A stretch of 64,000 nucleotides of DNA from positions 16,759,795 to 16,823,794 of the forward strand of contig NC_068992.1 in the NCBI RefSeq assembly GCF_001194135.2, given 5' to 3'. Shown piece after piece: positions 1,137-52,801 of this stretch. The position numbers and the translations under genes were made by a program. Numbering within the stretch: position 1 is the first letter of the stretch; the number at the start of each line of letters is the position of its first letter. The notes beneath the pieces are model-generated. The model did not search any database. It had not been told where the DNA came from and was given only the letters and a program-made list of their open reading frames with translations. The DNA comes from Octopus bimaculoides (taxonomy: Eukaryota).

Positions 1137-1290
1137 GATTCTTGCTCGAAGAGGCCATGTCATACAATTGTAGTTATGTTTCATGTAATCCCTTAGAGCA
1201 ACACCTTCCACAAACTCGACCATAAGACAAGGAAGACGGGTTTCGAGACACAATCCTAAAACGCTAACAATGTTTCGATGTCTGTGCTTC
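1137..1290 (-). CDS. Internal exon of receptor-like protein kinase; kinase subdomains IV-V (R-KHRHRNIVSVLGLCLETRLPCLMVEFVEGVALRDYMKHNYNCMTWPLRARI)
   Basis: Minus-strand acceptor ttttatttttgttccag|G and donor ATC|gtaagt. 154 nt, phase 2 to 0, no stop. H-x-N-I-V-x-x-L-G-x-C and hinge VEF match the kinase consensus. Joins in frame to exon 20873-21019. Confidence 0.93.
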
Positions 1291-2003
1291 CTGGAACAAA
1301 AATAAAATATCAGATAATATGTATATGTATATATATATATATATTCCCAATAAGCATAACTATTACTAATATAGATTCACGGTCCAAAATCTAGGTGGGT
1401 TACATAATACATTATACACACCAAAGCCTTTGACTAATACTTCAATTTCTCGACCTCGAAACAAATTTTACTTTGCCATGATGTGAACTCAGAATGTAAA
1501 TTGTTGGAGAACATTCGAAATTAAATTTGAGCCAATGCGGTGACGCTTTAGTCAATCACCACCACCTTGTAAGAAATTGCGACTTCATATATGAGTGAAG
1601 ATTCTTTCATACTCTATACTACTGTATAATAAGATTCCACGTAATGTTTGCCCAGAAGAAGCAAATGGCGAACGGAATGACAATTACGAGAATATGTTTT
1701 ACGTCAATAATGCAATGAGAAAACCATATCGTTGTAGTATGGATGAAATAAAGGTATAGCTTCGAAATTCTGAGATTCCGTGACCGAGTGTGACAGTCCG
1801 ATATCATATTCGAAAGATGAGCGTAGCTAAGACATTAACCAAGATAAAAATACGAGCTTGATTATATTAATGCCTAATAATTGATCGGATATGTTACTAT
1901 ACATGACGAGGCCTAATGATGCTAAGAAGACCCAGTGATTTAAGGTGTTTCATTGCAGGGATATACCAATCACTGAACGTATTTCAGAATATCATACATC
2001 ACA

Positions 2004-2210
2004 GGCAGTGAGCTGGCCGAAATGTTAGCATGCCGGACTAAATGCTTACCGGCATTTCGTCTGTCTTTACGTTCTGATTTCAAATTCCGCCGAGATCGAC
2101 TTTGCCTTTTGGGTTCGATAAATTAAGTACCAGTTGTGTACTGGAGTCGATCTAATCGACTGACCCCGTCCCCCAAATTTCGGGCCTTATGCCTAGAGTA
2201 GAAAAGAATA
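2004..2210 (+). mobile_element. tRNA-derived SINE, family M (body gccgaggtcgactttgcctttcatcctttcggggtcgataa; Meta-domain-like)
   Basis: Head ggcagtgagctggccgaaatgttagc and B-box-like ttcaaattcc. A 14-bp direct repeat agaatatcatacat flanks it at 1986-1999 and 2205-2218. More than 15 related copies occur in the window. The Meta-domain assignment is from recall. Confidence 0.85.
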
Positions 2211-4449
2211 TCATACATTACTTCTAATTTAGATGAAACATATCTTTAACAATTAAACACCAAAAAAACTGACTAGTCTTAGTTTTTTAGTTCACTGTAT
2301 TAGATATTATTGTGTGACTTTAAAGTAATTCGGTATGAATATTTCGGCTTTTCGTCCATCAGCATCTAAAAGAGCTTCTTTGAATGGACATCAATACCGT
2401 AGAAAAAAAATCAATTTCAGTAAAACTTTTATATTAAGTAGATACTAGAAAACACTGGTTTTCGTTTGATTAGTTCCGAACCCACAAAAAATTTCTTCTA
2501 CTGTGTTTGTTTGTAAATTCTGCCGGTGAAATAATGACCCTACATGCTCATGATTTTAGTTCTATATTCCTGTTTTTATAACCAAACGTATATTTTCGTT
2601 TCGCTACATATTTCAGTGCTGTGCGTACATATAAATGAATGTATGCATGCGTGTATGTGTATTGTGCATATGTATGCGTGTAGACACAGAGTTAAGGTCA
2701 AACAGTTACAGAGATTTATGGGTTAGGTCATTCTTATTCATGCAAAACTTTGTTTGTGCTGTAGGGTATATTTATACACCAAAACATACGGAATTTCCAT
2801 ACAGTCACACACACATACATACACACTTATACATATGCGTNNNNNNNNNNNNNNNNNNNNNNNNNNNNNNNNNNNNNNNNNNNNNNNNNNNNNNNNNNNN
2901 NNNNNNNNNNNNNNNNNNNNNNNNNNNNNNNNNNNNNNNNNNNNNNNNNNNNNNNNNATATGTATACCTATATATATATATGTATATGTCTACATATATA
3001 TACTTTCGTATTACATTTTATATATATATATGTTCAAATACAAGCGTGCCCAACAAAGGCGTTTATTTATACAAGTTCACAACATTTATCAGTCAGTTCT
3101 GCCATTGCATGTATGTCCCTGCTGATGTTCTGCTTTCTTTGCTAACAATTCTATACTGTAAATCCTGTTGTCATGAATACGGTGAAACATATTTGCCACT
3201 TTTGAACTGAGCGATCAATTACTCTGACCTGACAGCATTTGTTCCGCTATTATAAATCTTTCGAGATGGCTTGATACAGTAAAATGCACCCTCTACTTTC
3301 CGATTCACTTGGAATATTTATGAGGTTAATATTTGGCATACGTGAGGAGTTCTAATAACATATATGCAGAAATATATATGTGTGTGTGCGTGTATACATA
3401 CACACACACACGCACACACACATACTTAAATATGTATATCTTCTAACTTCAAAATAATACTATATATATATATATATATNNNNNNNNNNNNNNATATATA
3501 TAGTATTATTTTGAAGTTAGAAGATATATATATTTAAGGATGAAAAAGAATTATATATTTCTGAATTCATAAAATAAAGTAAACAGAAATGTAATTCATG
3601 CTAGCGTGCGATAAATCTAGTCAACTTTTAGATGTTAAATGGCCAGCCGTTTGCTTATAAATATATATTTATGTATCTGTGTGTATTTTGTGTATTTGAT
3701 TGTGTTGAATTTAACTTTCGAACCGTTCACCAGAAAAGCGGTACCAACTTCTAAGAGTTTGCAACATTGATGTAATATGGATTGGTATTCTCGGAACATA
3801 AGCACATTGAAAAAAACAGCTTAGATTTGAATCCATGAAACATGAATAACGAAGTACATTCCTACACGTTCGCAAATATTCACATATTATGGGTACATTT
3901 ATTTGCGTATATAATATGTATTTTGCTTTGCGTAGAAAGTATTATATTTAGACGTTGTATCAATATTTAAATACGAAATTACTATAACGAACGAATATGC
4001 AGTTTTGTGTCTCTTTATGATGGCTTGGGTTAAAATACAATTGAAGTTAGTTAAACTTCAGCCGAATATTGATGTAACATTATATAATGCATACTCGAAT
4101 TAAGAAGATTCATTTTCCAGTTGTACCTTCGGTTTATGTTAAGTTGAATTATTCTGCTGAAAACTACCTTTCTTCAACCTAAGCAGAAAACAATTTCAGC
4201 TTACTTTTAAACTTAAAACTTAGCTTGTAGTGAAGAGACAGTAATACAATTTTGTCACTGACCGCAGTACGGGGTGCCTTCAAACAAATACATTTTACAG
4301 CAAATGGTTTAATAATCTGAGTGATATTTGGCCTGACGATCCAGAAGCGTAAACATCATGAGGCGGATTTAATGAATCTAGCTATGCACACGTCAGAAAG
4401 GATATTCTATAGCCTTATTCTTGTATAAACTGTTGCTATTTATCCAATA

Positions 4450-4830
4450 GTGAAGGCGCAATGTCCCACTGGTTAGCGCAGCGGACTCGCAGTCATAGGA
4501 TCGCGGTTTCGATTCCCAGACCGGGCGTTGTGAGTGTTTATTGAGCGTAAACACCTAAAGCAACACGAGGCTCCGGCAGGAGATTGTGGCAAACCCTGCT
4601 GTACTCTTTCCCCACAACTTTCTCTCACTCTTACTTCCTGTTTCTGTTGTGCTTGTAATTCAAAGGGGTCAGCCTTGTCACACTGTGCCACGCTGAATAT
4701 CCCCGAGAACTACGTTAAGTGTACACGTGTCTGTGGAGTGCTCAGCCACTTGCACGTTACTTTCACGAGCAGGCAGTTCCGTTAATCGGATCACATGGAA
4801 CTCTCGACGTCGTAAGCGACAGAGTGCCAA
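4450..4830 (+). mobile_element. tRNA-derived SINE, family D (possibly Deu/Nin-domain type)
   Basis: A box and B box (gtttcgattcc) in the head. Near-identical to copies at 17265-17629(-) and 60948-61334(+). 12-bp TSD atttatccaata at 4438-4449 and 4832-4843. Confidence 0.9.
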
Positions 4831-4957
4831 GATTTATCCAATAAATTTCTAGCCAGAAATTTGAACCTTGATCCAGATCTTGATGTTGGAATTTGAATTA
4901 GCATTCAAAGATTATGAAAAACTTTTGCGAAGTTGCAATTTTCTTTATACTCTCTAA

Positions 4958-5150
4958 AGTAGGCAGAATTGTTAGTGTGCGGGACAAAACGATTAGTGTC
5001 ATTTAATCCGGCTCCTTACATTCTGACTTCAAATCCCGCCGAGGTCAGTTTGGCTGTCGTTCCTTCAGGGTCAATGAAAGAAAGAACCCTCAAGTAATCG
5101 GATCGATGTAATCGATTTACTGTCTTCACTCAAAATTGTTGGTTTTGAAT
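4958..5150 (+). mobile_element. Degenerate family M SINE
   Basis: ggcagaattgttagtgtgc...ttcaaatcccgccgaggtca...atcgatgtaatcga aligns with other family M copies. Confidence 0.7.
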
Positions 5151-6750
5151 ACTACGACGCAGTGGCGACCCGTTCAGATATAATGTTGGGATCGTGTTAA
5201 TTTACACACCGTGGAAACTGATAACCGATACTGTGACCACGGAGACCCAAGAAAAAAATTACATTCTCTACAATTATAAAAGGTACTGAAAGATATCTGG
5301 CTCCGTAAAGTAAATTATTTTTGTTTAGCTGTTTGGCTGTAAAACCATTATAATCAAAGCATTTTAAATGGTAGGAGCGTTTAAAGGGAACCAGTGACAC
5401 CTGTGTATTAATCCTGTGCTGGACTAGTATCTCTTGCACAAGATTCTTTCTTCTGAAAGCCTTCCGTGAAAATCCGGATACGCTCCGATCTCATGAAGTT
5501 CTATGCACGAGTTATCTCTGTTTTCATTTTGAAATTGTGTTGTGCATGCCGTTGTTCGAAACCAGCATCCGCGATAGAAAAGTTTCCGTATTGTTTACAA
5601 ACGTCCCATAACTTTCATTTCCTTTAGCAATAAAATATAAATAGCAAATAAAGTGAAACGATATAATGTACCCGAACGACTATATAGTATATATATATAT
5701 ATATCCTAATATCGATCGTGTAAACACGTGGCTACGATGAGATTTACTAATGGATTTTATTTAAAGAACCATTATAAAAAGATTTTACTGATATAAAATG
5801 TAATACCATGTTATGTGATAAAAATCGCTCAATAATGATAGCGTGGAACAGAACAAAGGGTTCAATATCATATTTTTTTAAAAATAATAACAGATCGATA
5901 GCTAAAAGTTTGATAAAGAAAAGATAAAAAGATGCCTCGCTTTTATTATATAATTTCTTCAAAGACACTCTTTATTTAGACCGTTGTTTTTTGTCCAATA
6001 AAATAAGACAGCAAAGGAGATCATTCACATTTAATTTGGTGAGAAAACGATAAGCTATTTCATGGGAAAATTGATGACCACCATACTTTGAACTACAGAA
6101 ATTACTACTGTATAAAATTGCTTATATATACATACATACATACATATATATATATATNNNNNNNNNNNNNNNNNNNNNNNNNNNNNNNNNNNNNNNNNNN
6201 NNNNNNNNNNNNNNNNNNNNNNNNNNNNNNNNNNNNNNNNNNNNNNNNNNNNNNNNNNNNNNNNNNNNNNNNNNNNNNNNNNNNNNNNNNNNNNNNNNNN
6301 NNNNNNNNNNNNNNNNNNNNNNNNNNNNNNNNNNNNNNNNNNNNNNNNNNNNNNNNNNNNNNNNNNNNNNNNNNNNNNNNNNNNNNNNNNNNNNNNNNNN
6401 NNNNNNNNNNNNNNNNNNNNNNNNNNNNNNNNNNNNNNNNNNNNNNNNNNNNNNNNNNNNNNNNNNNNNNNNNNNNNNNNNNNNNNNNNNNNNNNNNNNN
6501 NNNNNNNNNNNNNNNNNNNNNNNNNNNNNNNNNNNNNNNNNNNNNNNNNNNNNNNNNNNNNNNNNNNNNNNNNNNNNNNNNNNNNNNNNNNNNNNNNNNN
6601 NNNNNNNNNNNNNNNNNNNNNNNNNNNNNNNNNNNNNNNNNNNNNNNNNNNNNNNNNNNNNNNNNNNNNNNNNNNNTATATATATATATATATATATATA
6701 CACGCACACTCATATATACAGATATCTAAATACATATATATACACACATA

Positions 6751-6788
<38 letters not shown>

Positions 6789-7477
6789 GACACAAATATG
6801 TATGAAAGCATTCGTGTGTAAATCTGTATGTTGCAAGTTGTAAGTCTATGCATACGGATAGCCAAAAGTATGCACCTACATAATCTTTTCCATAAAAGGC
6901 CATCACCTAAGGTGACATATACTGACACTTCTGCCATATACTAAACAGCCGAAATTTTATTTTTTAATTAAAATAGGGTAATTATGCAAATTATAAATCT
7001 GTTTTCGTAGATAATACAAATAGGATGAAAGATTAAAATTTATTTTGGTTCATATTCACGTTTTGTATATTTTTGAAAAGTGTTATGCTGTCATGAACGG
7101 CTCTCGTTCAGAAATGCTATATCCTTATCATCTGAGACGTTAACCACCTCCCGAGACTGTTGCGTGTTTTATGAGTTGCTAGATGCACAGCCAGTGATAT
7201 TCAATTTAACATCTATGATATGTTGTTATTGTATAATCATTAACAGACCAAATCAAACATACCTATGATGAAAGACATTCTAACGGACTCCATTTAGTCG
7301 TCTTTATGCATCCCAAACAGCATTATCTAATAAAAGACACTTCTTTAACGTGATGTGTGAAAATTAAGGAAGAAATGCGTCCCGTAGAGGCTTTGTCACT
7401 CCGTGGCAGATAGTATTTGTATCGTTAAATTCATTGCTCCTAATCATCTTTAACAAAGAGTTTTGGAAACATCTCAG

Positions 7478-7573
<96 letters not shown>
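7478..7573. repeat. (ATT)n microsatellite
   Basis: Perfect trinucleotide run. Confidence 0.97.
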
Positions 7574-7575
<2 letters not shown>

Positions 7576-7785
7576 GGCGGTGAGCTGGCAGAAGATTTAG
7601 CATGCCGGGCAAAATTCTTAGTGGTGTTTCGTCCATTTTCATGTTCTAAGTTCAAATTCTACCGAGGTCGACTTTGACTTTCATCCTTTTGCAGTCGATG
7701 ATACAAGTACCAGTTATGTACTGCGGTGTATATAGTCGACTATCTCCCTCCCCCAAAATTGCTGCCGTTGTGGCAAAATTAGAAG
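7574..7785 (+). mobile_element. Family M SINE embedded in (ATT)n
   Basis: ggcggtgagctggcagaa head, flanked by (ATT)n on both sides. Confidence 0.85.
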
Positions 7786-7794
7786 CTGCTGCTG

Positions 7795-7828
<34 letters not shown>

Positions 7829-7860
7829 CATTATTATTATTATTATTCTCGTTATTATTA

Positions 7861-8058
7861 AGGCGGCAAGCTGACAGACTGGTTAGCACGCCGGGGAAAA
7901 CTCTTAGCGGTATTTCGTTTATTTTCACGTTGTAGGTTCAATTTCGGCCGAGGTGGACTTTGACTTCCGTCCTTTTGGGGTTGATAAACATTGGGGTCGA
8001 TGTAATCAAATCATCTCCTCCCCAAATTTCAGACCTTCTTCCTATAGTAGAAAGGAAT
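7861..8058 (+). mobile_element. Family M SINE (second tandem copy)
   Basis: ggcggcaagctgacagactggttagcacgccggg head; ends agtagaaagg followed by attattatt. Confidence 0.85.
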
Positions 8059-9035
8059 ATTATTATTTTTGTTGTTGTTTATCACCAACACTAAACGTGT
8101 CACGAACACTCTGTTAGTCTTTTATTCGTTTTCATTCTCATAAGTCTATCAGTTTCGTTTTCTGTTTTGTTGTATAGTGTGTCTGAGCAAAAAATACTTT
8201 TATCTGCCCTAAGGGGCGAAATTTCGAAACGTAAATATTTCTTTTCGAAATATTGGAAAAGCATTTATATGGCATTGTATTTGTCGTGAAACGAAGAAGG
8301 GAAGTGTGGAGGTGGTTTTCATGGCGAAATTGTCTTTCGCAGTCAGTTCCACCTGACAAATATATGGACAAAGGTAGTAGCAGCAAGATCAGAAGCAACG
8401 ATAAAAACACCAACATCAACAACATTACCATTATTAACACCGACTAAAACAACACCAACCAAAGCAACATTAACAACCACAACAACAACAACGAACAATA
8501 GAAAGAGGAAAAATAACAAAATAAAAATTCTTCACACATAATACGTGCAAATTCAATCAACACCACCACCACTGCCACCATTAACAGAGATACGGTCGCT
8601 GAATACGAAAATATCCACAAATCAAGCAGTGATAGTTTCACCGCTGGGGTGCATCAAGTACGAGAAAACGGTATGCTGTCAATGAATGAATTAAAATTGC
8701 AAGAAGCATGTTAAAAAGAAACGGAAGAAGGGTTTATCTTAACACATCCGAAAACATTGTAGAGGACAACAATACTGAGAAAAACAATAATCTACAAAAC
8801 CATACGAATAACTATTTGTAAACTAGAAAAGGCGGCATAGCAAGAAATTGAATAATGTCTGAGAACAGTGTGGGACACGAAAACGTACGCTGCAAGGAGA
8901 AACGATAGGGCACTATAGTGGTGATATTTTCCGCAGAAGAGGCAAGGGATCATTTTAACTTTAAAAAATTAAAGTTTTGGTACTTATATACCTCGGCCAT
9001 CGAGAAAATTAAAATTGGAGGCATACCACCAAAAA

Positions 9036-9109
9036 TGGACATCTGTTGGCTGGTAGCAGCTGTCCTCTTGGACATCTGCTGGCTGATAGCAGCTGTCCTC
9101 TTGGACATC
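9036..9109. repeat. 33-bp tandem repeat, about 2.2 copies
   Basis: tggacatctgttggctggtagcagctgtcctct repeated with 2 mismatches, plus a partial third unit. Confidence 0.9.
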
Positions 9110-9287
9110 AAGGACAAAATAAATATTTTCCCGGTGCACAAACTACAAAAACAGATGTGACTGTGTGAAGGCATGGAGTTGTAGGCGCAGGGGGACGTTA
9201 AAAATTTCTTACATGACACTAATCTTCACTTGGCCGTTGAGGGCAGAAAGAGACGAGATATAACCTGTATGGGGACCCCACATCAAA

Positions 9288-9341
9288 CGAGAGAAGGTGA
9301 TCCCAACTTTTGCCCGAGAGAAGGTGATCCCAACTTTTGCC
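9288..9341. repeat. 27-bp perfect tandem duplication
   Basis: cgagagaaggtgatcccaacttttgcc x2. Confidence 0.92.
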
Positions 9342-9675
9342 GACACCAGATCAACAACAGCAACCGCACCAGGTGACCACTGCATCTGCAAACACAGCAG
9401 TCACACCAACAACAACAACAATTACAGCAGCATCTACAGCAATAACAGCATGAACAACAACAGTGGAAGCAATATCAGTAAGCAAAACAGGAAACACACC
9501 AGCATCAATGATTTCCACATTCCAGGCAGCACTGAACAAAAAATGATGAGTCAAAATCCCCTAAAAGAACCCTTTTATCAACCGAATTTCAGCAAAAGAC
9601 ATATCCGCCCCTTTTTCGGACCACTCAGCAATAAACGGCAAAAAAAAAAAATAAATAAATAAAATATCATACTCA

Positions 9676-9962
9676 TAGGCGCAGGAGTGGCTGTGTGGTA
9701 AGTAGCTTGCTTACCAACCACATGGTTCCAGGTTCAGTCACACTGCGTGGCACCTTCAGCAAGTGTCTTCTACTATAGCCTCGGGCCGACAAAAGCCTTG
9801 TGAGTGGATTTGGTAGATGGAAACTGAAAGAAGCCCGTCGTACATATGTATATATATATATATATATATATATNNNNNNNNNNNNNNNNNNNNNNNNNNN
9901 NNNNNNNNNNNNNNNNNNNNNNNNNNNNNNNNNNNNNNNNNNNNNNNNNNNNNNNNNNNNNN

Positions 9963-10008
<46 letters not shown>

Positions 10009-10240
10009 TGTGTTTGTGTGTTTGTGTGTCTGTGTTTGTCCCCCCACCATGGCTTGACAACCGATGCTGGTGTGTTTACGTCCCCGTAACTTAGCGGTTC
10101 GGCAAAAAGAGTCCGAAAGAATAAGTACTAGGCTTACAAAGAATAACTCTTGGAGTCGATTTTCTCGACTAAAGGCGGTGCTCCAGCATGGCTGCAGTCA
10201 AAATGACTGAGACAATAAAAAGAGTAAAAGAGTAAAGAGA
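9676..10240 (+). mobile_element. tRNA-derived SINE, family C (CORE-like domain, internal (TA)n/(TG)n)
   Basis: Head ggcgcaggagtggctgtgtggtaag; CORE-like gcaccttcagcaagtgtcttctactatagcctcggg; internal microsatellite spanning a gap; tail gagacaataaaaagagtaaaagag. Homologous to 27965-28403(-) and 45453-45833(+). Confidence 0.88.
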
Positions 10241-10820
10241 GTATAGCAGCACAAAAAAAAAACTGGCGTGTGTGTGATCCTCTTTTATTTGTGACCTGAT
10301 ATTTTTTGGATGATTTTTACGGGCAAAAAATAAATCACCTACTTGATGGTCCAACGCAAGTATATATTGTGAAGAATATTGGATGTTTGTGTTTCTTAAA
10401 CCTGTGTCTGTCACCGCTATATAAATAGACTATGTTGTTAATTTACAGAAATCGTTCTTCTGAACGATATGTAGAAATGTGCAACTAGTTTTGACGCGTC
10501 TCGTCTTTCAAAGAGTGTTTATCCAAAGGTTTTTCAACAAAATGAATGAGTATCTAACAGCTACTTATGGAAAACAAACTAGGACTAACAGGCACCAATA
10601 CTACTCAGTCGAGAATCATTGCATTCAGTAAAAAATACGTATTAAATAACTAAAGCACTGGAACAGATTATGTGCGTGAATATATTGACATTAGGCGCCT
10701 TAAAGACATCCTTCAGATCAGTGAATCGATTATTACTTCCATTTCCTGAGAACACGTTCATTGTTCTTACTATATTATCAGCCAGCTAAATGCTCTTGTT
10801 TTTATTCTTGCTGGTGTTGC

Positions 10821-10823
<3 letters not shown>

Positions 10824-10907
<84 letters not shown>

Positions 10908-10912
10908 CATTA
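10824..10912. repeat. (ATT)n microsatellite
   Basis: Direct reading. Confidence 0.95.
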
Positions 10913-11353
10913 TTCAGTAGTTTTATTTTTATAACGTGCTTTCACTTCACTACCGAGCGCAGCTCTGTGTGTCTTGGGTATGTGCTGTGGTTTGCTGTGA
11001 TGCTCTTATGGTTACTGTATTGAAANNNNNNNNNNNNNNNNNNNNNNNNNNNNNNNNNNNNNNNNNNNNNNNNNNNNNNNNNNNNNNNNNNNNNNNNNNN
11101 NNNNNNNNNNNNNNNNNNNNNNNNNNNNNNNNNNNNNNNNNNNNNNNNNNNNNNNNNNNNNNNNNNNNNNNNNNNNNNNNNNNNNNNNNNNNNNNNNNNN
11201 NNNNNNNNNNNNNNNNNNNNNNNNNNNNNNNNNNNNNNNNNNNNNNNNNNNNNNNNNNNNNNNNNNNNNNNNNNNNNNNNNNNNNNNNNNNNNNNNNNNN
11301 NNNNNNNNNNNNNNNNNNNNNNNNNNNNNNNNNNNNNNNNNNNNNNNNNNNNN

Positions 11354-11396
<43 letters not shown>

Positions 11397-11795
11397 ATAT
11401 ATATATATATATATGTATATGTATATATATCTGTACACATATATATATGTGTGTGTGTGTGCATCAATATATGTTTGCGAGAGTGCGCGTTTGATTCAAT
11501 GTCACCCTGTTTGTGTATCTCTGTTGCCAGGGAGAGGTGAATGGATAATTTCCTCGTGGAATATCTAAATTAGAGAAGCGCAGTTCTATCATAATATTTG
11601 TCACATTATGAACCATCAGACAAGTTTCAGATGCAAAAAAAAACAAAAAAAAACCACCAAAAATAATTACTTTCTGTTTTGTGATGAACGAGAAAAACAA
11701 TTTATTTTTATTAAAACATTACGATCACGTAACTATAGTAATCACACGTTGAACCTTACATAATGTATGTTTTATAATACTGCAACAACAACCGC

Positions 11796-11796
<1 letters not shown>

Positions 11797-42029: not shown

Positions 42030-42220
42030 AATTATGGGGGAGGGGCTATGTCGATTTAATTGACCCCAGTGTCCAACTAGTACTTATTTCATCGACTCGG
42101 AAAAGTCGAAAGGCAAAGTCAACCTTAGGGGTGTTTGAACTCAGAAAGTAGAGGCGGCTGAAATACCGCTACGCATTTTGTTCGGCATTCTCATGATTTT
42201 TCCAGCTCATTGCCTTAAGA
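42030..42220 (-). mobile_element. Family M SINE
   Basis: gaaaggcaaagtcaacctt...tttgaactcaga...taccgctacgcattttg; about 80 bp from the TM exon acceptor. Confidence 0.75.
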
Positions 42221-42738
42221 AGACATAATAATGTCATGAGTATATAATGTAGTAAGTGTTGTGATGCTGGTACAACACAGGAAATATTTTGGTTCACTCA
42301 GGAAATTTCCACAATAAGGCCCAGTCCGTATTGAATTGTGGTGTCATGTGTGTCTCAATGAATCCTTGAGCCATGCCCACGGAAGGTAAGCTTCTGCAAA
42401 GGCCTCCTGTGCTGGACAGGTCAATGGATAGGTGATAGACTATTATGAACCACTTCTGCCAAGAAATATAGATGGGTTTGCATAAGTCTGGATACCCATA
42501 CCTAGAAAAGCAAAGTTACTGAAGCATTTCATATGTTAATTGAAGAACTTGAAACATTCAGTTAACACATGAAAAATAGTCAGAAACTCGGGAATTTTGT
42601 AAGACAGAACTTGTCAACTTTATCTTTGGTTCTTTTGAGGCTTAAAATAATGTACCAGTCAAATCTTAGCTTCTAGGAATTGACCAACCTCTTCCCTTAA
42701 AATAGCTGGCCTTGCGCCAAAATTAGAAAAAATATATA

Positions 42739-43190
42739 CAGTAATCACTCGCCATTTCGCGGTTCACCTATCGCGCTCTCAGTACGTCACGGATTTTTCT
42801 GGCTAATATATGTAACTTTATATCGCGGACTCCTCTGCGACCGATAGGTATTTATATTTTATTAGATTTTAATCATTTCTGTCGTAAAATTTAATTAATA
42901 AATAAGAACCACAGTAGAGTGCTGCACTGTATAACACATTAATTAAAATATATTAAAACGAAGTAAGTAGTGTACCGTAGATGAGTAAACATAGATTGGC
43001 ATACACTGCATGGAAAATGCAACAGGGGAGGCGAGTGTGTAGTGTTGTTTTGCATTTATAATAAAATAAATATATACAAATTATAAAATAACTTTATAAA
43101 TATATACATTAATATTTCTGCTTTGCGGATTTTCACTTATCGCGGGGTTTTTTGGAACGTAAAACCCGCGTTAGAGGAGGGGTTGCTGCA
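42739..43190. mobile_element. Tigger-like non-autonomous element (MITE)
   Basis: Begins ta|cagtaatcactcgccatttcgcgg and ends cgcgttagaggaggggttgctgca|ta (degenerate TIRs, TA flanks). Subterminal ttatcgcgg motifs at both ends. Confidence 0.6.
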
Positions 43191-43194
43191 TATT

Positions 43195-43735
43195 TTAGGG
43201 CGGCGATCTAGGAGAACGGTTAGCACGCCGGTCAAGATGTTTTACAGGATTTCATGTATTTAATGTTCTGTGTTCAAATTTCACCGAAGTTTATTTTGTC
43301 TCTCATTCTTTCCGAATCGATGATATAAGTACCAACCAAGTACTGCAGTCGATGTACAGGACTTCTTCCTCTGCTCAAAAATTCTCGCTTTGTGCTAAAA
43401 TTTGAAACCATTGGAGTTGAAATTCCGCCAAGGTCGACTTTGCCTTTCACCATTCGGGGTCGATAAAAATGTACCATTTGAGTACTGCCCCGTCCCTCCC
43501 CCAAATTTCAGGCGTTGTGTCTTTAGTTGAACGGATTATTATAAGCAGGTGAACTGTTAGGATGCAGGACGAAATGCTTAGTGACATTTCGGTTGTCTTT
43601 ACTTTCTGAGTTCAAATTCCGCGAAGGTCGACTTTGCATTTCTTACTTTCGGAGTCGATGAAATAACTACCAGTTGAGTACTTGGATCGATGTAAACGCG
43701 CAACCCCCTTTCACATAATTTCAGACCATTAGACA
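43195..43735 (+). mobile_element. Cluster of three family M SINE copies (one 5'-truncated)
   Basis: The ttcaaatt(t/c)c...gtcgactttgc/gtaccag module recurs at about 43270, 43420 and 43610. Confidence 0.8.
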
Positions 43736-44539
43736 GGATTATTTCTCCACAACTTTTCATGCTTGTATAAAATAAATATCGAATTATTTATAAATGAAAT
43801 TAATTTTTGTATCATTTTAGGAAAATTTAGCTGGTATTTCTAGCAGGTTGTATGCCGGCATAGAGGTTCACTTATAGCATCGTACTCTACATAGAATAAA
43901 TAAAGTCATAAATAAGTCATATCATAATCTCATGGCTACCGTTCTAGCTTTCTATTAAAATGCAAGAACAATTGTTTCGTTTAATCCATCGCTTGATTTT
44001 ACTATTAATATATATATATATTTTACTATCTCACTATTTCTCACATTACAATTAAGTCAATTCTGAAACAAATTCAATTATGTATATTCTTATGCTGGTT
44101 TTCTTTTCTTAATCCGCATAGGATTTATAATCACAGATAATCTAACTTTTTTTTCCGCTTAATATAATTCAACAAATGAGCTTATATCCAATTATGATAT
44201 TTTATGTAATTTTCACTTTTGTTTCTGAAGACAAAACGAAGCTACAACAAAAGTAACCAATGTTTGTTTAACAATTTTCATTTGAACTGCACGCTTTGTT
44301 CCCGGCTATAGAATGGATTAAGCGGATTCAGTAAAAACAAATATACATGTGTGAGAGTGTATATGTGCATGTATGTATATATAAACACTCACACACACAC
44401 GTACATGCGCATGGGAAACTGTGTATGTATATATGTGCGTACGTGTATGTGTATATATATATTTCTGGCCTTCTATCTATTGTAGAAAATATTATTATTA
44501 TCATTATTATTTTATTTTTAAGGTACTAAGCAGAAAATA

Positions 44540-44930
44540 TCATAGCTGTGGTGCACAAAATCCTTAGCGTAACTTATTCAGGTTTTTCATGTTCTTAGTT
44601 CAAATCCTGCCGAGATTCACTTTGCATTTCTGGGTCGAGAAAACTAAATACCAGTCAGATACTGCGACCGATATATTCGATTATACCCACTTCTCCAAAA
44701 TTTAAGGCATTGAGTTTTCTGGAGAAGGTGCCAAACTGGCAGAATCGTTACCACCTTGAACAAAATTCTTAGCGACATCCCTTTGCATTCTGAGTTCAAA
44801 TTTCAGCAAGCTTGATTTTGCCGCTCATTTCTTGGGGTTTCATGAAATAAGTACCAGTACAGGTGACGATGTAATCGACTAGTCACCTACCACAGAATTT
44901 TAGGCTTTTTTACTATTGTAGAAAGAATTA
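44540..44930 (+). mobile_element. Two degenerate tandem family M SINEs
   Basis: ttcaaatcctgccgagattcactttgc at about 44600 and ctggcagaatcgtta...gagttcaaatttcagc at about 44735-44810. Confidence 0.7.
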
Positions 44931-45452
44931 CCATTATTGTTGTTGCTGCTGTGTGAAGAATTGTCGCTTCATAGTTGGGGATATTCTGATCACGATGGTA
45001 AGGGCGTGAGTTCGATTCCCGATGACAACTTATGTCTTTGAGCAAGACACTTTATTTCACGTTGCTCCATCTGTGTGCCTCCAGTAGAAATCATTATTAT
45101 TACGCTCTTCTAGGTGACATAGAATAAACATTGAATTATATACGAAAGGAATTTAAGTTCAAGATTATTCATCTTCTTCCAGACGATATAATTGAATATG
45201 TGTGTATAGAACAAATATAATCAATTGAAATTTCTGAGGGCAATTATGATCCGATGATAGGAATATGTAATAAACGAAATTGAATGTCAGATTACATAAA
45301 ATGATAAATAAGTTTTTCTCATTCCCTTGTTACATTGTTGTACACGTGCGTCAAATATACGATTTTCGCATTGACGCAAAACTGTGAATGCGATGATATT
45401 TCCAATAGAATATCCTGAATTAACAGAATTGCCTACTGAATCTATATGTATT

Positions 45453-45833
45453 GGGCGTTGACATGGCAATGTGGTAAGACGCTTGCTTCTCAGCCACATG
45501 GTTCCGGGTTCAGTCGTACTGCGTAACAACGTTGGCAGGTGTCTTCTACTATAGGATCGGGATGACCGAGGTCTTGTGAGTGGATTTGGTAGACGGCAAC
45601 TGAAAGAAGGTCATCGTATATGCGCGCGTCTGTGTTTGTCTCACTACCACTGTTTGACAACCAGTGTTGGTGTGTTTACGTCCCCGTAGCTTAGCATTGT
45701 TCGGTAAAAGATAACCATAGAATAAGCACTCGGTCTTTAAACAAGAAATGAGGTGAATTCATTCGACTAAAAGATTCTTCAGGGTGGTGCACCATGGTGG
45801 CCGCAGTCTAATGCCCGAAACAAGTAAAAGATG
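45453..45833 (+). mobile_element. Family C SINE
   Basis: atggcaatgtggtaagacgcttgcttctcagccacatggttccgggttcagtc...ggcaggtgtcttctactatagg...caagtaaaagat. Confidence 0.82.
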
Positions 45834-46099
45834 ATATCATAGAAGGGTTCATTGAGAAGTTTAGGCCCTCTATTTTAGCCTCTGTATCGAATCCAATACT
45901 CTTGAGAGTTTCTAACATACATACAATTCTAATGATGATGAGGGGTGTTAGTCGATTAAACCAACACCAGTACTTTACTCTATGAACCAGGAGAGTTTAA
46001 AAACACTGATGCTTCCGGTGAGATTTACACAGTGATTGTAAAGACCTAGAAGAATTACTAAAGGGCATTTTTAACGGACTCTCTATCAATTCTGCCAAT

Positions 46100-46290
46100 C
46101 GATTGAAGGCTGTCGATGTCTTGCAAACACTTCACACATGGAAGTGCTACCAGTCGAGAACTCCGCATCCCGGAAGCCAGCAAGTGTATGGGGTCATCAG
46201 GAGAGAAGGCGCGCTGTTTCAGGGCCTACCTCTCGACGGCATCAATGAGCACCGGCCCACCTCACTGATATGAGGCCCCGGTTGCTAGAT
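46100..46290 (-). mobile_element. Degenerate LINE (CR1/L2/Jockey-type) post-RT fragment
   Basis: GC-rich island; minus translation VLIDAVER*ALKQRAF...SGMRSSRLVAL resembles the LD-x-x-ER-x-A...RR-x-VA-x-L motif. Weak. Confidence 0.4.
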
Positions 46291-47559
46291 CAACTGGTTA
46301 TTAAAAACAAAGCTCAATATTTCTCTAGCCATCGCTCATTGTCACTTTTTAACCAAATCCAAAACACAATGTTATACGAGACGTATGATCATCGAATAGA
46401 CTATCATTTGACTGATGCTCCATCTCACTGCTTTCTAAGATCAAAACCTTGTCGAGGTCAACTTTTGTTAGCGGAGTTCAGTCTTGTACTGGGTTCGAAC
46501 TTTCGCTTTCTCACAGCATATATTCGCGGAGATCAATCCTGCACGTGGTCACCATTAGATTCCAACTGTCCACCACACACCACACATAATATGTCATGAA
46601 TTCTCGCAATCCTCATCAGGTGTTATATTGGTTACGAAAATTTACTATATTTTCTATAATACAATTATTGCTATCTAAGATTTCAGTATCTATAACTTGA
46701 GTAAAACGACATTACACTTTGTCATTCCCGGAAAGATAAAATATTTCACGATAACTACATGTAATTTACCCATCCAAACAAAATAATATTTCTTATTATC
46801 TGACGTTACAAGATGAGAATCGTACAGAAGAAGAAAGAGTTCTCACCGAGATGAGATTGTTGTTCGATTCGTATTTAAAGTTGTATGGCTACACGTATAT
46901 CCTCCTAACAAGATGAAAGGTATGAGTGAAACATCAAAGAACTACTTCTCGGTTCTTCTCTAAACGTACGGTTTTGTAGCTAAGTATGAAATCAATAATA
47001 TAATAGAGTCAACCTACCAAACTAGAAGGAATTTCTAACATGCAAAAGCATATTAATTGATTTTCAGTAGGTTCAAAGACATGCAAATTTAAAGGAGATT
47101 TGAATTCAATTAAATTCTATCTTATCGACCACAAACTTTGGGGAGGAAAATCTATATCATTCCTATTTGATCTTGAAACATAAAGAGATATTAAAACTTA
47201 GTAACTTTTTTCTCTATCACTTGCTTTACCGATTCTACTATTCCCCGCCCAGATGTTTTGTAACAAAAATGGATATTACTTAAGAAATTAGTAACGTACA
47301 TTGGACTCCCTCTTCCGATATTCAGCGCATAATACTAACTTGATCCCTTGTTAGCTATATCTCTACACGCTCTTTACTCACTGCTGCTAAGCTTGGTAAC
47401 TATATCCACGAAATTTCTCACTCATTATTTACGTTGCTTATTTTATACTAAAAAATTCATATTTTTCAATGCTACATATTTCTTCTAAGAAACATGAATT
47501 AATTCATGACAGCTGGAGTAACAGGAAATCAACGCCATTTATTTAAGAGATATAATTGA

Positions 47560-47635
47560 ATACAATAAACTTCCTCTAATCGGATACTACCAGGACAGAG
47601 AGTTAACTGAATTGCCGGTTAACTGAATTTTCTAG
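47560..47635. mobile_element. Tc1/Tigger-like terminal fragment
   Basis: tacaataaacttcctctaatcggatac resembles a TA|CAGTAAA..CCTCT..ATCCGG terminus. Confidence 0.35.
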
Positions 47636-48712
47636 ATACCTCACCCAGAATATAGTAGAAATGAGAGAAATAAGGAAGAAATAAAAGCATAATTCGAGTA
47701 ACAAATCCGGTGTATTAACGTAATAAAAATATAGGTATTCTAAGTAGAGTAAAATAAAACACTTTACTGTTCTTTGAGAACAAAAGATTTACTTTAGATA
47801 CAGCGAAAACGTTCTTTTCATGACAATCACTTAACGGAAATTAACAAAGTTCTCGTGGCTCTCATTAACGGACACGTTCCTTCCTTTTCGTTTCTGGGTG
47901 TCGTTTATTTAACAGTTTTGTTTATTTCAATACCGTGTATAAGACGATGTTATTGTACTGCAATAAATTTTCCCCACTGTTTTCTTAGTTCTTCCATATC
48001 ACACCACAAACTACTTGGAAGAACATTGCCTTAAGTAATATCATTGCCACAATAATTCATTTGACAAACAAGTCTATTATCTGACTTCATTGTTTGAATT
48101 TTCACGGAATAATTTCATATTTATCAACCGTATTGATCTTCCGGATATCACCTTCATTATATTTTATCTCATATGATACAATGACTAGTAGATATCCATT
48201 TCTGTAACATTGAGCAACCTATTTTCTGAATAATGGCTTTCAAATGTTTGAAGGCATATTATTTTCATAGCTATACTATAAGGAAAATGGCGCGTCGTGC
48301 AATAGATGCACAGTTTCTTAAACTATTATTAGATTGAACTGAAGTAAATTAGATTTACATAGAATCCTAAATGCATGGTTGTCTTGGTGTAGAAGGATTT
48401 AATCCTGAGTCAGAGTTCTTAGTATAAAGTGATCTAGTTCGAAAATATAAATATTAAGTATAGAACTACACCCAAACTGTTATTACTTAACTCTCTAAAG
48501 AACATCACATAAATTGGTAAATATATNNNNNNNNNNNNNNNNNNNNNNNNNNNNNNNNNNNNNNNNNNNNNNNNNNNNNNNNNNNNNNNNNNNNNNNNNN
48601 NNNNNNNNNNNNNNNNNNNNNNNNNNNNNNNNNNNNNNNNNNNNNNNNNNNNNNNNNNNNNNNNNNNNNNNNNNNNNNNNNNNNNNNNNNNNNNNNNNNN
48701 NNNNNNNNNNNN

Positions 48713-48748
<36 letters not shown>

Positions 48749-49505
48749 AGAAGCTCATTGTTTTTACTATATCATTTACGCTGGTTTAGAACCTATTGTA
48801 GTAGCTAGCAGGCATAGATATTTTGTTAGCCCTTTAAACCTTGGCCGTGAAAATCATCGAGGATGCAATGGCTTAGGGGGACACGATTACGCCAGTACTA
48901 GGCTGATACTCATTTCAGCTGAGTGTACTAAAGCAACATGAAATTACTTTCTTAAGAGCACAACATGCTGACTCATCTACTAATCGAAACTACACCCTCA
49001 TGATCGCGAGCCAAGATTTCTAACTGTTTGGCCACAAGCCTTTCCAGTTAAATGCAGAATGATAATATTCTGACGTCGTCGTTAAAATGATAGAACTTGA
49101 TGTTGGTTTAAGCATGATTTTAAATCAGAAAGCTAAGGGACGCAACTAATTACAGCTATAATGCTTTTTCGGAGAGATAACATCGATATAGTTTAACGTT
49201 GAAATATCACAAATTCCGGAGTAAGAAATCAATTCCTATAATTCAATGAAACTTACATTTTGAGTCACGAAAGAATATAACAGATTGTTGATATCCGTTA
49301 CGTTATAGTCAGACTCACAACCAAAAGAGACATAACACAGTATGACATTTAATCTAAAACTTTATTGATTCTGTTCTCGGCAATATACTAATATCAGCGC
49401 ACCTTCGTTTTCCTTCTATTTAGACTGAAAGTAGTGGTATATTTCGAGATTAATAATTGAATATTACTAAATCTATCATAAATATAAAAGAATCTTTCTA
49501 CGTAC

Positions 49506-49578
49506 CTTGGCGAGTGAAGTTAACAGCAGCTTTACCACATCCATTGATACAGGCACACCGGTGTCTCAGCTCGGCATA
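49506..49578 (-). CDS. Ectodomain exon (YAELRHRCACINGCGKAAVNFTRQ)
   Basis: Acceptor cttacttacaatatttag|TAT and donor CAAG|gtacgt. 73 nt; only the phase 0 to 1 frame is open. Contains CACINGC and an N-F-T sequon. Phase-compatible with both neighbouring exons. Confidence 0.82.
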
Positions 49579-49944
49579 CTAAATATTGTAAGTAAGATTC
49601 AAATGAAAATAATACATTAGAAACTATACTCACGAAATCACATATTTTATGAATTGTTCAAGATGAAAACGATTGTGCTGACTTTAGGAATGCTTTTATA
49701 GCATATACCAAGTGTTTTACACAATGAGAAATGGTAATAACAGTGAATGGAAATTACGAATGTTCTTAGAATTAACACTTTATGGACCGTTATAGTTGTC
49801 CTTTGATAGCAATAAACCGGGCAATTGCTATTTCTTCTTACAATAAAGTGAAATAAATAACGTCTATGTATTTGCTTTTCAAGATTCGTGATGTAAAGTC
49901 TCGTGCTGATACAATTATTCTTTTTTCTTCTTTTATCTTCTCTT

Positions 49945-50330
49945 CTCTAAGCACAAGGCCCGAGATTTTAGTGGAGGGCGCCATTCGATTAGATGGACCC
50001 CGGTATGCGACTGATACTTAACTTATCGACCCCGAAAGAATGAAAGGAAAAGTCGACTTCGGCGAAATTTGAACTCAGAACGTAAAGACGGACGAAATAC
50101 CTATTTCGTTATTGCCCACAAGGGGCTAAACATAGAGGGAACAAACAAGAACAGACGAACGGATTAAGTCGATTACATCGACTCCAGTGCGTAACTGGTA
50201 CTTAATTTATCGACCCCGAAAGGATGAAAGGCAAAGTCGACCTCGGCGGAATTTGAACTCATAACGTAACGGCAGACGAAATACCGCTAAGCATTTCGCC
50301 CGGCGTGCTAACGATTCTGCCAGCTCGTCT
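49945..50330 (-). mobile_element. Family M SINE dimer (complete long-tailed copy plus 5'-truncated copy)
   Basis: The body ttatcgaccccgaaag...aaagtcgac...gaatttgaactca...gacgaaatac occurs twice (50023-50100 and 50208-50285). Confidence 0.88.
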
Positions 50331-51334
50331 GAAACGGATACTGTTATATTGGTCATTTTACTTCCTTGCCAAATAAACACACGCACTATATATTCGTTCT
50401 CCACTTGTATATTACACCGACTGGAAATCTTTCGTCACACAATTGTGACCTCTTCAACAATCCTCCGTCCCACGTGGCTGCTTCTGTTCTGTTTAGACCA
50501 TTCTGTCTTTCTCTGGTGTCTATCCATAATATTTAATTTTATGATATGTATAAGATTTGCGCGCGCGCACGTGTGTGTACATATACGCACACGAAATATA
50601 GTTTGCAGTCTATTGAGCTGAATATATTGAATATTTCCCGCGGATCAACGGGGTGTCAAAACCCAATGTGAAATATGAATGACAGAATTTGAAAACGGTC
50701 AGCATTCAACAACAATAATTACAGCCACTCTTGCAAAATCATATCACAACAAATTGTATTAACATAATAGTAATAATGATGGTTCCAAATTATCGTACAG
50801 GATCAGTAATTTTAGGGTGTTGGTGTTATTTGGAAAATTATATATTCTATTATTTAAGTTCGCACGTTTGCGAAATAAAAACAAAACATTGAAGTTAAAA
50901 CCATTTTCATAATATATATTTGAAAAGATTAATACAGGTGAGCGATTAGTTATCATAAGTCGTGTTCAAGGTCTTCATGGTTTTTTACGCAAACAAAATC
51001 GTCTTATATATATATATATGAAGAACATTAATACTCATGAGAGATATTAATGTTAGTGGCCGCAAGCTAAAACCGTAAAGACAATATATATATATATATA
51101 TATATATAAAAGAATTACATATGTCTATTATATATATATATGTGCGTGTATGTGTATGCGTGAGTGCGTGTTGTTTTTCATGCATGTAGTATTTATGTAT
51201 GCATGAATGATATAATAAGTTTGTGTGTGAGTGTTTGTGCTTATGCGAGTGCCTATCTGCAGAAGGAAGAACTGAACAAGTCTTTAGAGTAGGACTCGTC
51301 AGGTGCAAGTGCTTCTAATCTTAAATCCTCTAAG

Positions 51335-51640
51335 GGATCCAAGTCATGACTTCTAGATACTCCTCTACTGCCGCAGAATTTGACCACTGTAAGTGCTACT
51401 GTCTGAACATGGATGTGTATTGTATTCCCGAGCCAAGATACCTAGAGTTCTGTAACCGCTTCCGTTAATGACGCCAGTTAACTCTAGTGTAAATTATGTC
51501 TTCATCATTAACAATATCCATTTCGAACACTTGTCATCTGCTTCTGCATTGCCTAAGATTCAAGAAATCGAGAGCCGCTTTATGAGATCAGGGGCAAATT
51601 TGCCCACTAAACGTCTTGCATTCTATTACATCCGTGAGAA
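51335..51640 (+). mobile_element. Degenerate RTE-type LINE APE endonuclease fragment
   Basis: Translations AAEFDHCKCYCLNMDVYCIPEPRY (cf. L-x-I-D-I-x-x-I-Q-E-x-R) and SALPKIQEIESRFMRSGANLPTKRLAFYY (cf. IEKIQPRMMVATFNGNP). Confidence 0.55.
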
Positions 51641-52384
51641 AAGAGAGTTGGTAACGCCAAATTTTGTGGGGTGTCGCTCTTAAAATAAAACACATCTGAT
51701 TATTTCTAAGCAGCAATATATATTCACAAAAGCTGCTCAAATTGACTACGTTTAACATTCTCTATGAAGATTGAATTTCTAACTTTACTTCGTTCTTTCA
51801 AAAACAATAAAGTGAAAATCTATTGCGACATACAATAGATTTTGACACGTTAATAGATTATTCTCCTTAATTCTAATTCATACAGGCGTTTTAGAAGAAG
51901 GATTTAGAAACACCTTTACTTAAAATTACTTTTTAGAAATCCATAGGCACCAGAAATTCTAAAGTAAGAGATAATTTGAAGAAGAAAATAATTTATTGAA
52001 CTGTAAAATGCGTTTCCATAAATTAAAAAGTTTTCGTTTTCTCACATCTGAAATAAAGAAAGGATGCTTGATTGAGAAGCTTCCCTAATGTTATTATAAT
52101 AAAATTAATTTTACCATACGGCTTCAATAAAATGCTTTTAGATAACATTTACTGTTTTGAGATAAATTAAAAAAAGGTGCAACTATGAGCTGATATTTTT
52201 CGTATAGTTTTAGCTGTTGATTCCGTAAAATATGTGCCGTGTTGCTTGTGTTATACTACTGAGAAAGAATCTACAGTTCGGGAATTGTGTGGATTGTTAA
52301 TAGTATGTGAGGTGTGATAGAGAACCTTAATAGTTTTATACTAGTATGTATGATTATACTTTGTGTTTTATAACGCTATTTAAT

Positions 52385-52525
52385 TCTGGTACAAGGCCAA
52401 CATTTTCGGAAAAAAAGGTAACTCGATTACATCAACCCCAGGTCTCAGCTGGTACTTATTTCCTCGACACCCCCAAAGGATGAAAGGCAAAGTCGGCCTC
52501 AGCAGAATTTGAACTCAGAACGCAA
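52385..52525 (-). mobile_element. Family M SINE (3' part)
   Basis: ggatgaaaggcaaagtcggcctcagcagaatttgaactcagaacg. Confidence 0.8.
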
Positions 52526-52692
52526 GTGAATATTTTCTACTAACCTCTTCAAATAACATTCCCAGTAGAAGGAGAGAAACAAGTAAGAGATGAAACATAT
52601 TAAATTTAATGTGATCATTGCAAATCCAATGGACTACGTATGTGTAAGTTGTCATTAACGAAAACGAATTAGTTACATGGTTTCATACTTAC

Positions 52693-52801
52693 AATATCTT
52701 TCTTCAGCTCATCTGTCAATATTTGAAATAATCCATCGTCCGGGTCCTTTCGGTCAGCATCGCAAACCAAAGCAACATGAACCCAAAGTTTTCGATGAGA
52801 C
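52693..52801 (-). CDS. Ectodomain exon (SHRKLWVHVALVCDADRKDPDDGLFQILTDELKKDI)
   Basis: Acceptor gtctttattatttacag|G and donor ATT|gtaagt. 109 nt; only the phase 2 to 0 frame is open. Joins in frame to 49578. The V-x-L-x-C-D ... L-x-H-x-C-A-C pattern across the junction resembles the MRH/ATG27 domain C-terminus. Confidence 0.82.

Follow-up and report, generated by a model that had tools for sequence, protein, structure and literature searches.

A 64,000-nucleotide stretch of the Octopus bimaculoides genome (NCBI RefSeq assembly GCF_001194135.2, contig NC_068992.1, forward-strand positions 16,759,795 to 16,823,794; hereafter the window) carries 52 kb from the middle of a very large gene, read on the minus strand, whose predicted product is a type I single-pass receptor kinase of approximately 580-600 residues. 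Its layout appears to comprise a signal peptide, one ~155-residue domain with the mannose-6-phosphate-receptor-homology (MRH) fold, a short glycosylated stalk, a transmembrane helix, a conserved juxtamembrane segment, and a complete kinase domain—an architecture to which we assign a probability of roughly 0.7. The placement of an MRH ectodomain on a single-pass receptor kinase appears to be new; the sequences themselves are already public and uncharacterized. More tentatively, we propose that this protein and its relatives represent an undescribed class of animal receptor kinase, apparently confined to molluscs, in which a single MRH domain would control a tyrosine-kinase-like domain and so couple recognition of glycans or lysosomal-type glycoproteins, whether on the cell surface or within endosomes, to phosphotyrosine signaling.

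Gene structure and expression

The sequence-only reading of this DNA had claimed six minus-strand exons with canonical splice sites and a stop-free path of 261 codons through them, and both claims hold. AG stands directly before, and GT directly after, each of the six exons, and the joined exons (784 nt) are open throughout in frame 1; with a stop expected in ~7% of codons at the window's G+C content of 35.5%, an open run of 261 codons has a chance probability of ~6.5e-9. The assembly gaps, 14 runs of N in 64 kb, are all intronic, and no exon contains N. The exons, introns, and main motifs are as follows.

Exon 1, 52693..52801, minus strand: AG/GT borders; codes SHRKLWVHVALVCDADRKDPDDGLFQILTDELKKDI, the predicted penultimate strands of the MRH fold with the family-conserved cysteine of LVCD
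Exon 2, 49506..49578, minus strand: predicted last MRH strand, terminal cysteines (YAELRHRCAC, 49549-49578), start of the stalk, and an NFT sequon (49513-49521)
Exon 3, 41782..41949, minus strand: stalk with an NVT sequon (41927-41935), transmembrane helix (41822-41893), and start of the juxtamembrane segment
Motif in exon 3, YQKL, 41786-41797, minus strand: family-conserved Y-x-K-L-P of the juxtamembrane segment
Exon 4, 31841..31973, minus strand: basic juxtamembrane segment, conserved DYEP (31924-31935), and first residues of the kinase domain
Exon 5, 20873..21019, minus strand: kinase subdomains I-III, with GGGIFA (20998-21015), VAVK (20953-20964), and the alpha-C Glu in KKEV
Exon 6, 1137..1290, minus strand: kinase subdomains IV-V and the hinge, KHRHRNIVSVLGLCLETRLPCLMVEFVEGVALRDYMKHNYNCMTWPLRARI
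Five introns, within 1291..52692, minus strand: 3.1, 7.6, 9.8, 10.8, and 19.6 kb, containing 12 of the 14 assembly gaps

Assembled transcripts, in the form of Logan RNA contigs from several independent studies of one organism and from one run of a second (runs X1, X4, X6, X7, X8, and X10), bear out all five predicted splice junctions (52693/49578, 49506/41949, 41782/31973, 31841/21019, and 20873/1290): at each, contigs stop matching exactly at the proposed exon border and then read into the next exon. Exons 1, 3, 5, and 6 are matched exactly, and the loose ends of the matching contigs read into the neighboring exons. Exon 1 is found as exactly 52693-52801 in contigs of X1, X6, X7, and X8, followed by exon 2; exon 3 is covered in four runs and exon 5 in X1, X7, and X10, and both borders of exon 6 are confirmed by contigs of X1, X7, and X8. 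Single contigs of 2-3.5 kb span all six exons with zero mismatches, and these tie the transmembrane exon to the ectodomain exons on one side and the kinase exons on the other.

The order and spacing of the exons can be followed along one contig of 3471 nt from X7, in which exon 1 lies at 729-837, a piece of exon 3 at 909-1084, a piece of exon 5 at 1210-1359, and a piece of exon 6 at 1356-1512 (the last three pieces overrun the exon ends by a few ambiguous bases). These are the positions to be expected from the summed exon lengths; the gaps therefore conceal no further exon, and the reading frame runs on uninterrupted. Contigs of X1 and X7 both end 1959 nt past exon 6, and a contig of X8 reaches 821 nt upstream of exon 1, so that the mRNA measures at least ~3.6 kb. 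The gene is thus real, spliced, and expressed. Of its coding sequence, the window includes no more than the final third of the ectodomain, followed by stalk, transmembrane helix, juxtamembrane segment, and kinase N-lobe. The preceding exon (ending ...VLSVSYKGLK) and the following exon (beginning CLQASEGLNF) are absent from the window and sit outside it or, less likely, in a gap; the orthologous gene of Octopus sinensis spans ~170 kb.

Read in order, the window encodes 46-56 ectodomain residues, a 33-residue stalk, the transmembrane helix, a basic juxtamembrane segment, and kinase subdomains I-V. Hydropathy, charge, and Pfam agree with the earlier assignment of the last three of these parts. 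The helix GLLTGLIVGGIALLMVIVLIVGLC has 24 residues and a Kyte-Doolittle mean of 3.1, and the segment that follows it carries six Lys or Arg in 30 residues; the two N-x-T sequons of the stalk lie on the ectodomain side of the helix. Pfam returns PK_Tyr_Ser-Thr (PF07714) on the window peptide at residues 156-254 (model positions 1-100, E 7e-11) and no domain besides the kinase, so that of the Pfam families named in the sequence-only reading the kinase model was recovered and the ATG27, Man-6-P_recep, and CIMR models were not. The N-lobe shows a glycine loop in which the third Gly is replaced by Ala (GGGIFA), the VAVK lysine, and the alpha-C Glu in KKEV, and a PDB sequence search places its closest relatives among MLK4, B-Raf, and KSR. 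A Y-x-K-L-P motif of YxxPhi type follows the helix by 9-11 residues in 11 of 12 family members (Babylonia has YSTLS), and the DYEP motif downstream of it is conserved across the mollusc family described below; both may be endocytic or lysosomal sorting signals, or phosphotyrosine docking sites.

Relatives across the molluscs

When the exon 6 translation, unaltered, was compared by HMMER with 1.84 billion representative proteins, the top match was XP_029643365.1 (P0001) of O. sinensis, a protein of 579 residues named 'probable serine/threonine-protein kinase drkC' (drkC being the gene of Dictyostelium VSK3; the paper on that kinase does not use the name). The exon 6 translation is 100% identical to residues 327-377 of this protein. 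CAI9730957.1 (P0082) of O. vulgaris, with 590 residues and a complete ectodomain, falls in the same cluster. Aligned with XP_029643365.1, the window peptide together with two RNA loose ends is identical at 270 of 281 positions (96%) and unbroken at every junction, with one 2-residue indel in the stalk and just two substitutions in the kinase domain; conservation is thus higher in the kinase part than in the stalk, and the gene is under constraint. The stalk difference, at 41894-41949, is an insertion of two residues (SA) relative to both O. sinensis and O. vulgaris, accompanied by several substitutions in the stalk and juxtamembrane segment. These are real species differences, because the RNA contigs of the first of the two organisms match the window without a single difference.

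Relatives with the same architecture, for which the sequence-only reading had proposed a search in molluscs and annelids, occur elsewhere in the phylum. The layout recurs in the bivalves Solemya velum and Tegillarca granosa and in the gastropods Babylonia areolata, Lottia gigantea, Physella acuta, and Aplysia californica; truncated members without the ectodomain were found in the bivalves Potamilus streckersoni and Sinanodonta woodiana and in the gastropod Plakobranchus ocellatus. On this evidence from sequence, the family is present in cephalopods, gastropods, and bivalves. Its members bear source names such as 'hypothetical protein', 'uncharacterized protein', 'Protein kinase domain-containing protein', 'ephrin type-A receptor 3-like', 'SIS8', and 'sty17', which are automatic names derived from kinase similarity. 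Members with complete N-termini begin with a hydrophobic, signal-peptide-like segment. The O. sinensis and O. vulgaris gene models disagree with one another at both the N- and the C-terminus, and neither starts with a clear signal peptide; since the transcripts continue for 821 nt or more ahead of exon 1, the 5' end is probably mis-annotated in both.

A divergent MRH fold in the ectodomain

The ectodomain is predicted to be a single, divergent MRH-fold domain, the last strands of which are coded by exons 1 and 2. Two independent methods, a sequence profile and a fold search, support this fold by their agreement. For the former we built an MPR-repeat profile that combines bovine CD-MPR with all 15 human CI-MPR repeats, the sequences having been verified against PDB chains. 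Aligned to it by hhalign, six family ectodomains reach a probability of 88.9% and E 2.4e-6, in register, pairing I-N-L-x-P-L of the family with D-L-S-x-L of the profile, WNYxFNPC with Y-x-I-N-V-C, and V-C-K with A-x-C, and further along L-G with V-G, L-x-Y-x-G with L-x-Y-x-G, and V-x-L-V-C-D with I-x-F-x-C. The cysteine framework of the family runs C...NPC...GDxC...VCK...LVCD...CCC; the cysteines at NPC, VCK, and LVCD and the C-terminal one align with MPR cysteines, and the pair corresponding to CD-MPR C106/C141 is absent.

AlphaFold2, run without templates on the O. vulgaris ectodomain with a 10-sequence alignment, yields an all-beta model of 11 strands (pLDDT 74.9, pTM 0.73). Searched against the PDB with Foldseek, it finds nothing but MRH proteins, from four different MRH families, among its 20 best matches, in keeping with what had been supposed of the ectodomain. 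CI-MPR domains match best (E 1.1e-5, probability 1.00, TM-score 0.56-0.62 on the query, and 0.67 on the single CI-MPR domain 8 of entry 6z31), XTP3-B, OS-9, and Yos9 occupy ranks 15-20, and the first match outside the MRH proteins has E 0.78. A second target, the Solemya ectodomain, produced a poor model (pLDDT 57), and yet OS-9, CI-MPR, XTP3-B, GNPTG, Elapor1, and Yos9 rank first among its matches, of which 16 of the top 17 are MRH proteins; these too suggest an MRH fold. The description of the ectodomain as 'MRH/ATG27-like' is therefore kept in its first half, by the family profile and the fold search, and not borne out in its second: the ATG27 model (PF09451) matches neither the window peptide nor any of ten family members, and no solved ATG27 structure appears among the fold matches.

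The kinase domain

In full-length family members the kinase domain matches PF07714 at E ~1e-44 to 1e-55, and its catalytic motifs appear complete, as would befit an active enzyme. VAVK, HRD, DFG, and APE are found (Aplysia has DFS for DFG), and the C-lobe of the O. sinensis orthologue reads HRDIRCAN, DFG, and WTAPE. The Hanks-Hunter criteria for tyrosine kinases are a catalytic loop HRDL(R/A)A(A/R)N and a P+1 loop P(I/V)(K/R)W(T/M)APE. The family catalytic loop is HRD[L/I]RCxN and the P+1 loop, in 10 of 12 members, P-x-[IVLPT]-R-W-T-A-P-E; by these criteria both loops classify as tyrosine-kinase-type. Overall similarity to kinases in the PDB is equal for TKL kinases and the reconstructed Src/Abl ancestor (B-Raf 109 bits, RIPK4 106, the ancestor 106, RIPK2 102), and tyrosine specificity is probable, as judged from the motifs.

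The activation segment contains a family-conserved, Cys-rich insert, QPLRExC..DCxC....SACPxxxRWTAPE, usually with four to five Cys (approximately residues 430-470 of P0001). Lying between DFG and APE, such an insert is unusual for a protein kinase and may be a metal-binding or redox-sensitive element.

We also considered, and set aside, a receptor Ser/Thr kinase of the TGF-beta type: the ectodomain has the predicted MRH fold, the juxtamembrane segment is without a GS repeat, and Pfam returns no match to Activin_recp or TGF_beta_GS.

Proposed mechanism and alternatives

What the data establish is the structure and expression of the gene, the elements of its topology, the identity of the kinase, the MRH fold, and the spread of the family; ligand class, dimerization, substrate specificity, and cellular location are inferred. 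The MRH domain would bind a ligand, be it a protein or a molecule carrying glycans, outside the cell or in a lumen; binding would bring two receptors together, and the cytosolic kinases would then phosphorylate one another in trans and, after that, downstream substrates, probably on tyrosine. Tyrosine is favored because HRD[L/I]RCxN and P-x-[IV]-R-W-T-A-P-E agree with the consensus of tyrosine kinases. Endocytosis or endosomal cycling, as for the MPRs, is suggested by the motif of YxxL type that comes 9-11 residues past the membrane.

A number of points weigh against this interpretation. The ectodomain piece in the window has no Pfam match and no PDB sequence match. Its 70 residues score 4.0 bits against the MPR-repeat profile, a score reached by 24 of 2000 shuffles (p ~0.012); genuine MPR fragments of equal length reach 8-50 bits when left out one at a time, and hhalign of the window fragment against the profile gives P = 0.053. 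The fragment does align at the profile end, in the expected register, with VHVALVCD on vItfvCd and terminal Cys on terminal Cys; taken alone it reads as weakly MRH-like and is not decisive. The sequence-only reading had drawn its MRH domain from the joined window peptide, which by itself does not carry the assignment; the full-length orthologues and paralogues do. Within that family, the MRH-type Pfam models (ATG27, Man-6-P_recep, CIMR, PRKCSH) give no match in ten members at E <= 1, and the family ectodomain profile finds none among PDB sequences. One of five AlphaFold2 models is confident, and the alignment behind them holds 10 sequences. The fold was assessed on an orthologue, and the N-terminal two-thirds of the ectodomain, which lie beyond the window, are read from orthologues, as are the catalytic-loop, DFG, and P+1 motifs, the C-lobe exons being outside the window. 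The Octopus gene models lack a clear signal peptide, and the surveyed literature holds no experiment on any family member. To these may be added the residues expected of a P-type lectin. Of the binding set (Gln, Arg, Glu, Tyr), the Gln, which is essential, is aligned by the profiles with a family-conserved Lys, that of VCK; Octopus, Babylonia, and the member P0059 have the Tyr, and Solemya, Lottia, and Physella lack it; and a conserved Arg, in KSxR, lies two residues off the position of the sugar-binding Arg. By this mapping, which comes from a global profile alignment of low confidence, the family does not have the complete sugar-binding set; lectin activity is therefore doubtful, and binding of Man-6-P or mannose should not be presumed.

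It is a real possibility, if short of even odds, that the MRH domain is not a lectin and instead binds a protein (compare CI-MPR domain 11 and IGF2), or acts only as a module for dimerization or scaffolding, with no role in the recognition of glycans or lysosomal enzymes. The Lys in place of Gln, the patchy Tyr, and the missing equivalent of the CD-MPR C106-C141 disulfide would all be consistent with this, and most of the 15 CI-MPR repeats are generally known to bind no sugar; known stand-alone single-MRH proteins, however, are all glycan readers, as is also general knowledge, the KSxR Arg is close to the sugar-binding position, and the residue mapping depends on the low-confidence alignment just mentioned. 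A different question is where the receptor acts. It may reside not at the cell surface but in the membrane of the trans-Golgi network, endosome, or lysosome, as the MPRs, ATG27, and VSK3 do, sensing what the lumen contains and acting by phosphorylation on the machinery of trafficking or fusion—a placement we regard as possible though rather unlikely. Known membrane proteins that bear MRH domains are, as general knowledge has it, endomembrane cargo receptors, and the YxxPhi-type Y-x-K-L-P is kept in nearly all members; such motifs also serve the ordinary endocytosis of surface receptors. VSK3 offers a precedent, as a receptor-like kinase for tyrosine that is found on late endosomes and lysosomes (PMC2064856), but the similarity to DrkC is limited to the kinase domain, and the VSK3 ectodomain is a TIG domain.

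We consider it improbable that the MRH likeness is itself spurious and that the ectodomain is an unrelated, mollusc-specific beta domain containing cysteines, which would make the protein an orphan receptor kinase. Blank Pfam and PDB sequence searches, the weak window fragment, the four poor models of five, and the low pLDDT of the Solemya model can be cited in its favor; the profile match at E 2.4e-6 has its motifs in register, however, the template-free fold search returned MRH proteins in 20 of 20 matches, and even the poor Solemya model did so in 16 of 17. Least probable by far, to the point of being negligible, is that mis-assembly or a chimeric transcript has joined unrelated exons, or that we are dealing with a pseudogene. 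The many gaps of the scaffold, noted above, could be cited for this, but the long RNA contigs from independent studies cover the six exons without mismatch, the same architecture has been annotated independently in several mollusc genomes, and the frame is open, with the kinase part conserved above the stalk. On these grounds we rejected the readings as a pseudogene or a chimeric assembly.

Intronic surroundings

Scans of the window for tRNA genes and Rfam families came back empty, and apart from the receptor kinase nothing in it makes a convincing coding gene. The introns are rich in microsatellites, dispersed short repeats, and degraded open reading frames of mobile elements, and many of the N runs are flanked by microsatellites of (TA)n, (CA)n, or (TATG)n type (e.g., 6158-6676, 18484-18923, and 23658-24147). 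The one Pfam match among intronic open reading frames is to GIY-YIG and falls below threshold (E 0.0085, 16.8 bits where the cut-off is 22.6). It comes from 218 open codons with YIGQTGRRLADRFAQH on the minus strand at 56033-56686, in the intron that precedes exon 1, which may be what is left of the endonuclease of a Penelope-like element. A minus-strand open reading frame fragment at 39610-39831, ...HDDNASCHRALITCEFLTENMASLPHPPYSPDLAPAGFCLF, is blank in Pfam at E <= 0.01 and by eye looks like the C-terminal part of a mariner/Tc1-type transposase.

Two sets of dispersed repeats are also present. Copies of the one lie at 4450-4851, 60948-61351, 58145-58296, and 17404-17586, those at the window ends being 86-91% identical; this repeat carries an open reading frame fragment, ...CDKADPFELQAQQKQEVRVRE..., on either strand, has no Pfam match, and looks like an interspersed element family. 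The other, shorter repeat (9688-9845, 31113-31270, 45464-45621, and 28142-28400) is 65-80% identical among copies, which share the translation ...GTMWLVSKLLTTQPL..., and appears to be an intronic family resembling short interspersed elements.

Comparison with known systems

The animal receptor kinases usually listed are the receptor tyrosine kinases (RTKs), the TGF-beta-type receptors, and the receptor guanylyl cyclases. To our knowledge, characterized MRH domains all belong to cargo receptors, ER quality-control lectins, and glycan-processing enzymes, whose cytosolic output is sorting and not phosphorylation. The suggestion that the architecture is undescribed stands: no Pfam MRH-type model, curated name, or paper found covers an MRH domain together with a kinase. 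Neither an MRH-kinase receptor nor any protein of this family is described in the MRH, P-type-lectin, and mollusc RTK literature (most subscription papers and InterPro architectures aside), and an oyster kinome paper and a nematode lectin survey do not mention the combination. If the proposed reading is true, the mollusc MRH-kinase family would add a new type of sensor to animal signaling. It would give glycobiology a testable candidate for kinase signaling driven by glycans or lysosomal enzymes, and mollusc immunology and cell biology a new receptor family. It would also exemplify a domain missed by Pfam models and recovered by profile-profile and fold comparison.

The nearest relatives of the ectodomain are the MPRs, CI- and CD-, with which the octopus protein appears to share the MRH beta-barrel; CI-MPR domains are its best Foldseek matches, and the MPR-repeat profile matches at E 2.4e-6. 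CD-MPR is alike in plan, being likewise a type I protein with a single membrane-adjacent MRH domain and a tyrosine-based cytosolic motif. The MPRs, however, end in a short sorting tail where the octopus family has a complete cytosolic kinase, and the family is without the sugar-site Gln and one MPR disulfide. OS-9, XTP3-B/ERLEC1, and Yos9 match in fold (at ranks 15-20 for the good model and 1-2 for the Solemya model), but they are soluble lectins of the ER lumen, without transmembrane helix or kinase, and show no sequence-level match to the octopus family. From the side of the kinase, animal RTKs such as Eph and EGFR have in common with the octopus protein the type I topology and the tyrosine-type catalytic and P+1 motifs; their ectodomains are not akin to it, the octopus kinase is no closer to TK than to TKL, and its Cys-rich activation segment is unusual.

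Two receptor-like systems outside the animals are also comparable in design. Dictyostelium DrkC/VSK3 shares with the octopus protein a single-pass, RTK-like topology and what may be a TKL-type kinase in both. For VSK3, which belongs to the TKL type, kinase activity on tyrosine has been measured; it is located on late endosomes and lysosomes and carries a TIG domain (PMC2064856). Its luminal part is thus Ig-like where that of the octopus protein is predicted to be MRH, and the drkC name that NCBI gives to the Octopus proteins reflects kinase similarity only. The plant lectin receptor kinases and WAKs (RLK/Pelle) combine, as the octopus protein appears to, an ectodomain of carbohydrate-binding type with a transmembrane helix and a TKL/IRAK-like kinase, and plant WAK-like RLKs are the next best matches to exon 6 after the mollusc family itself. 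The plant proteins belong to another kingdom and use other lectin folds (G-, L-, and C-type, EGF/GUB_WAK), and they have a Ser/Thr-type HRDxK loop (P0042) in contrast to the HRD[L/I]RCxN of the molluscs; in design, nevertheless, the MRH-kinase family would parallel the plant lectin receptor kinases.

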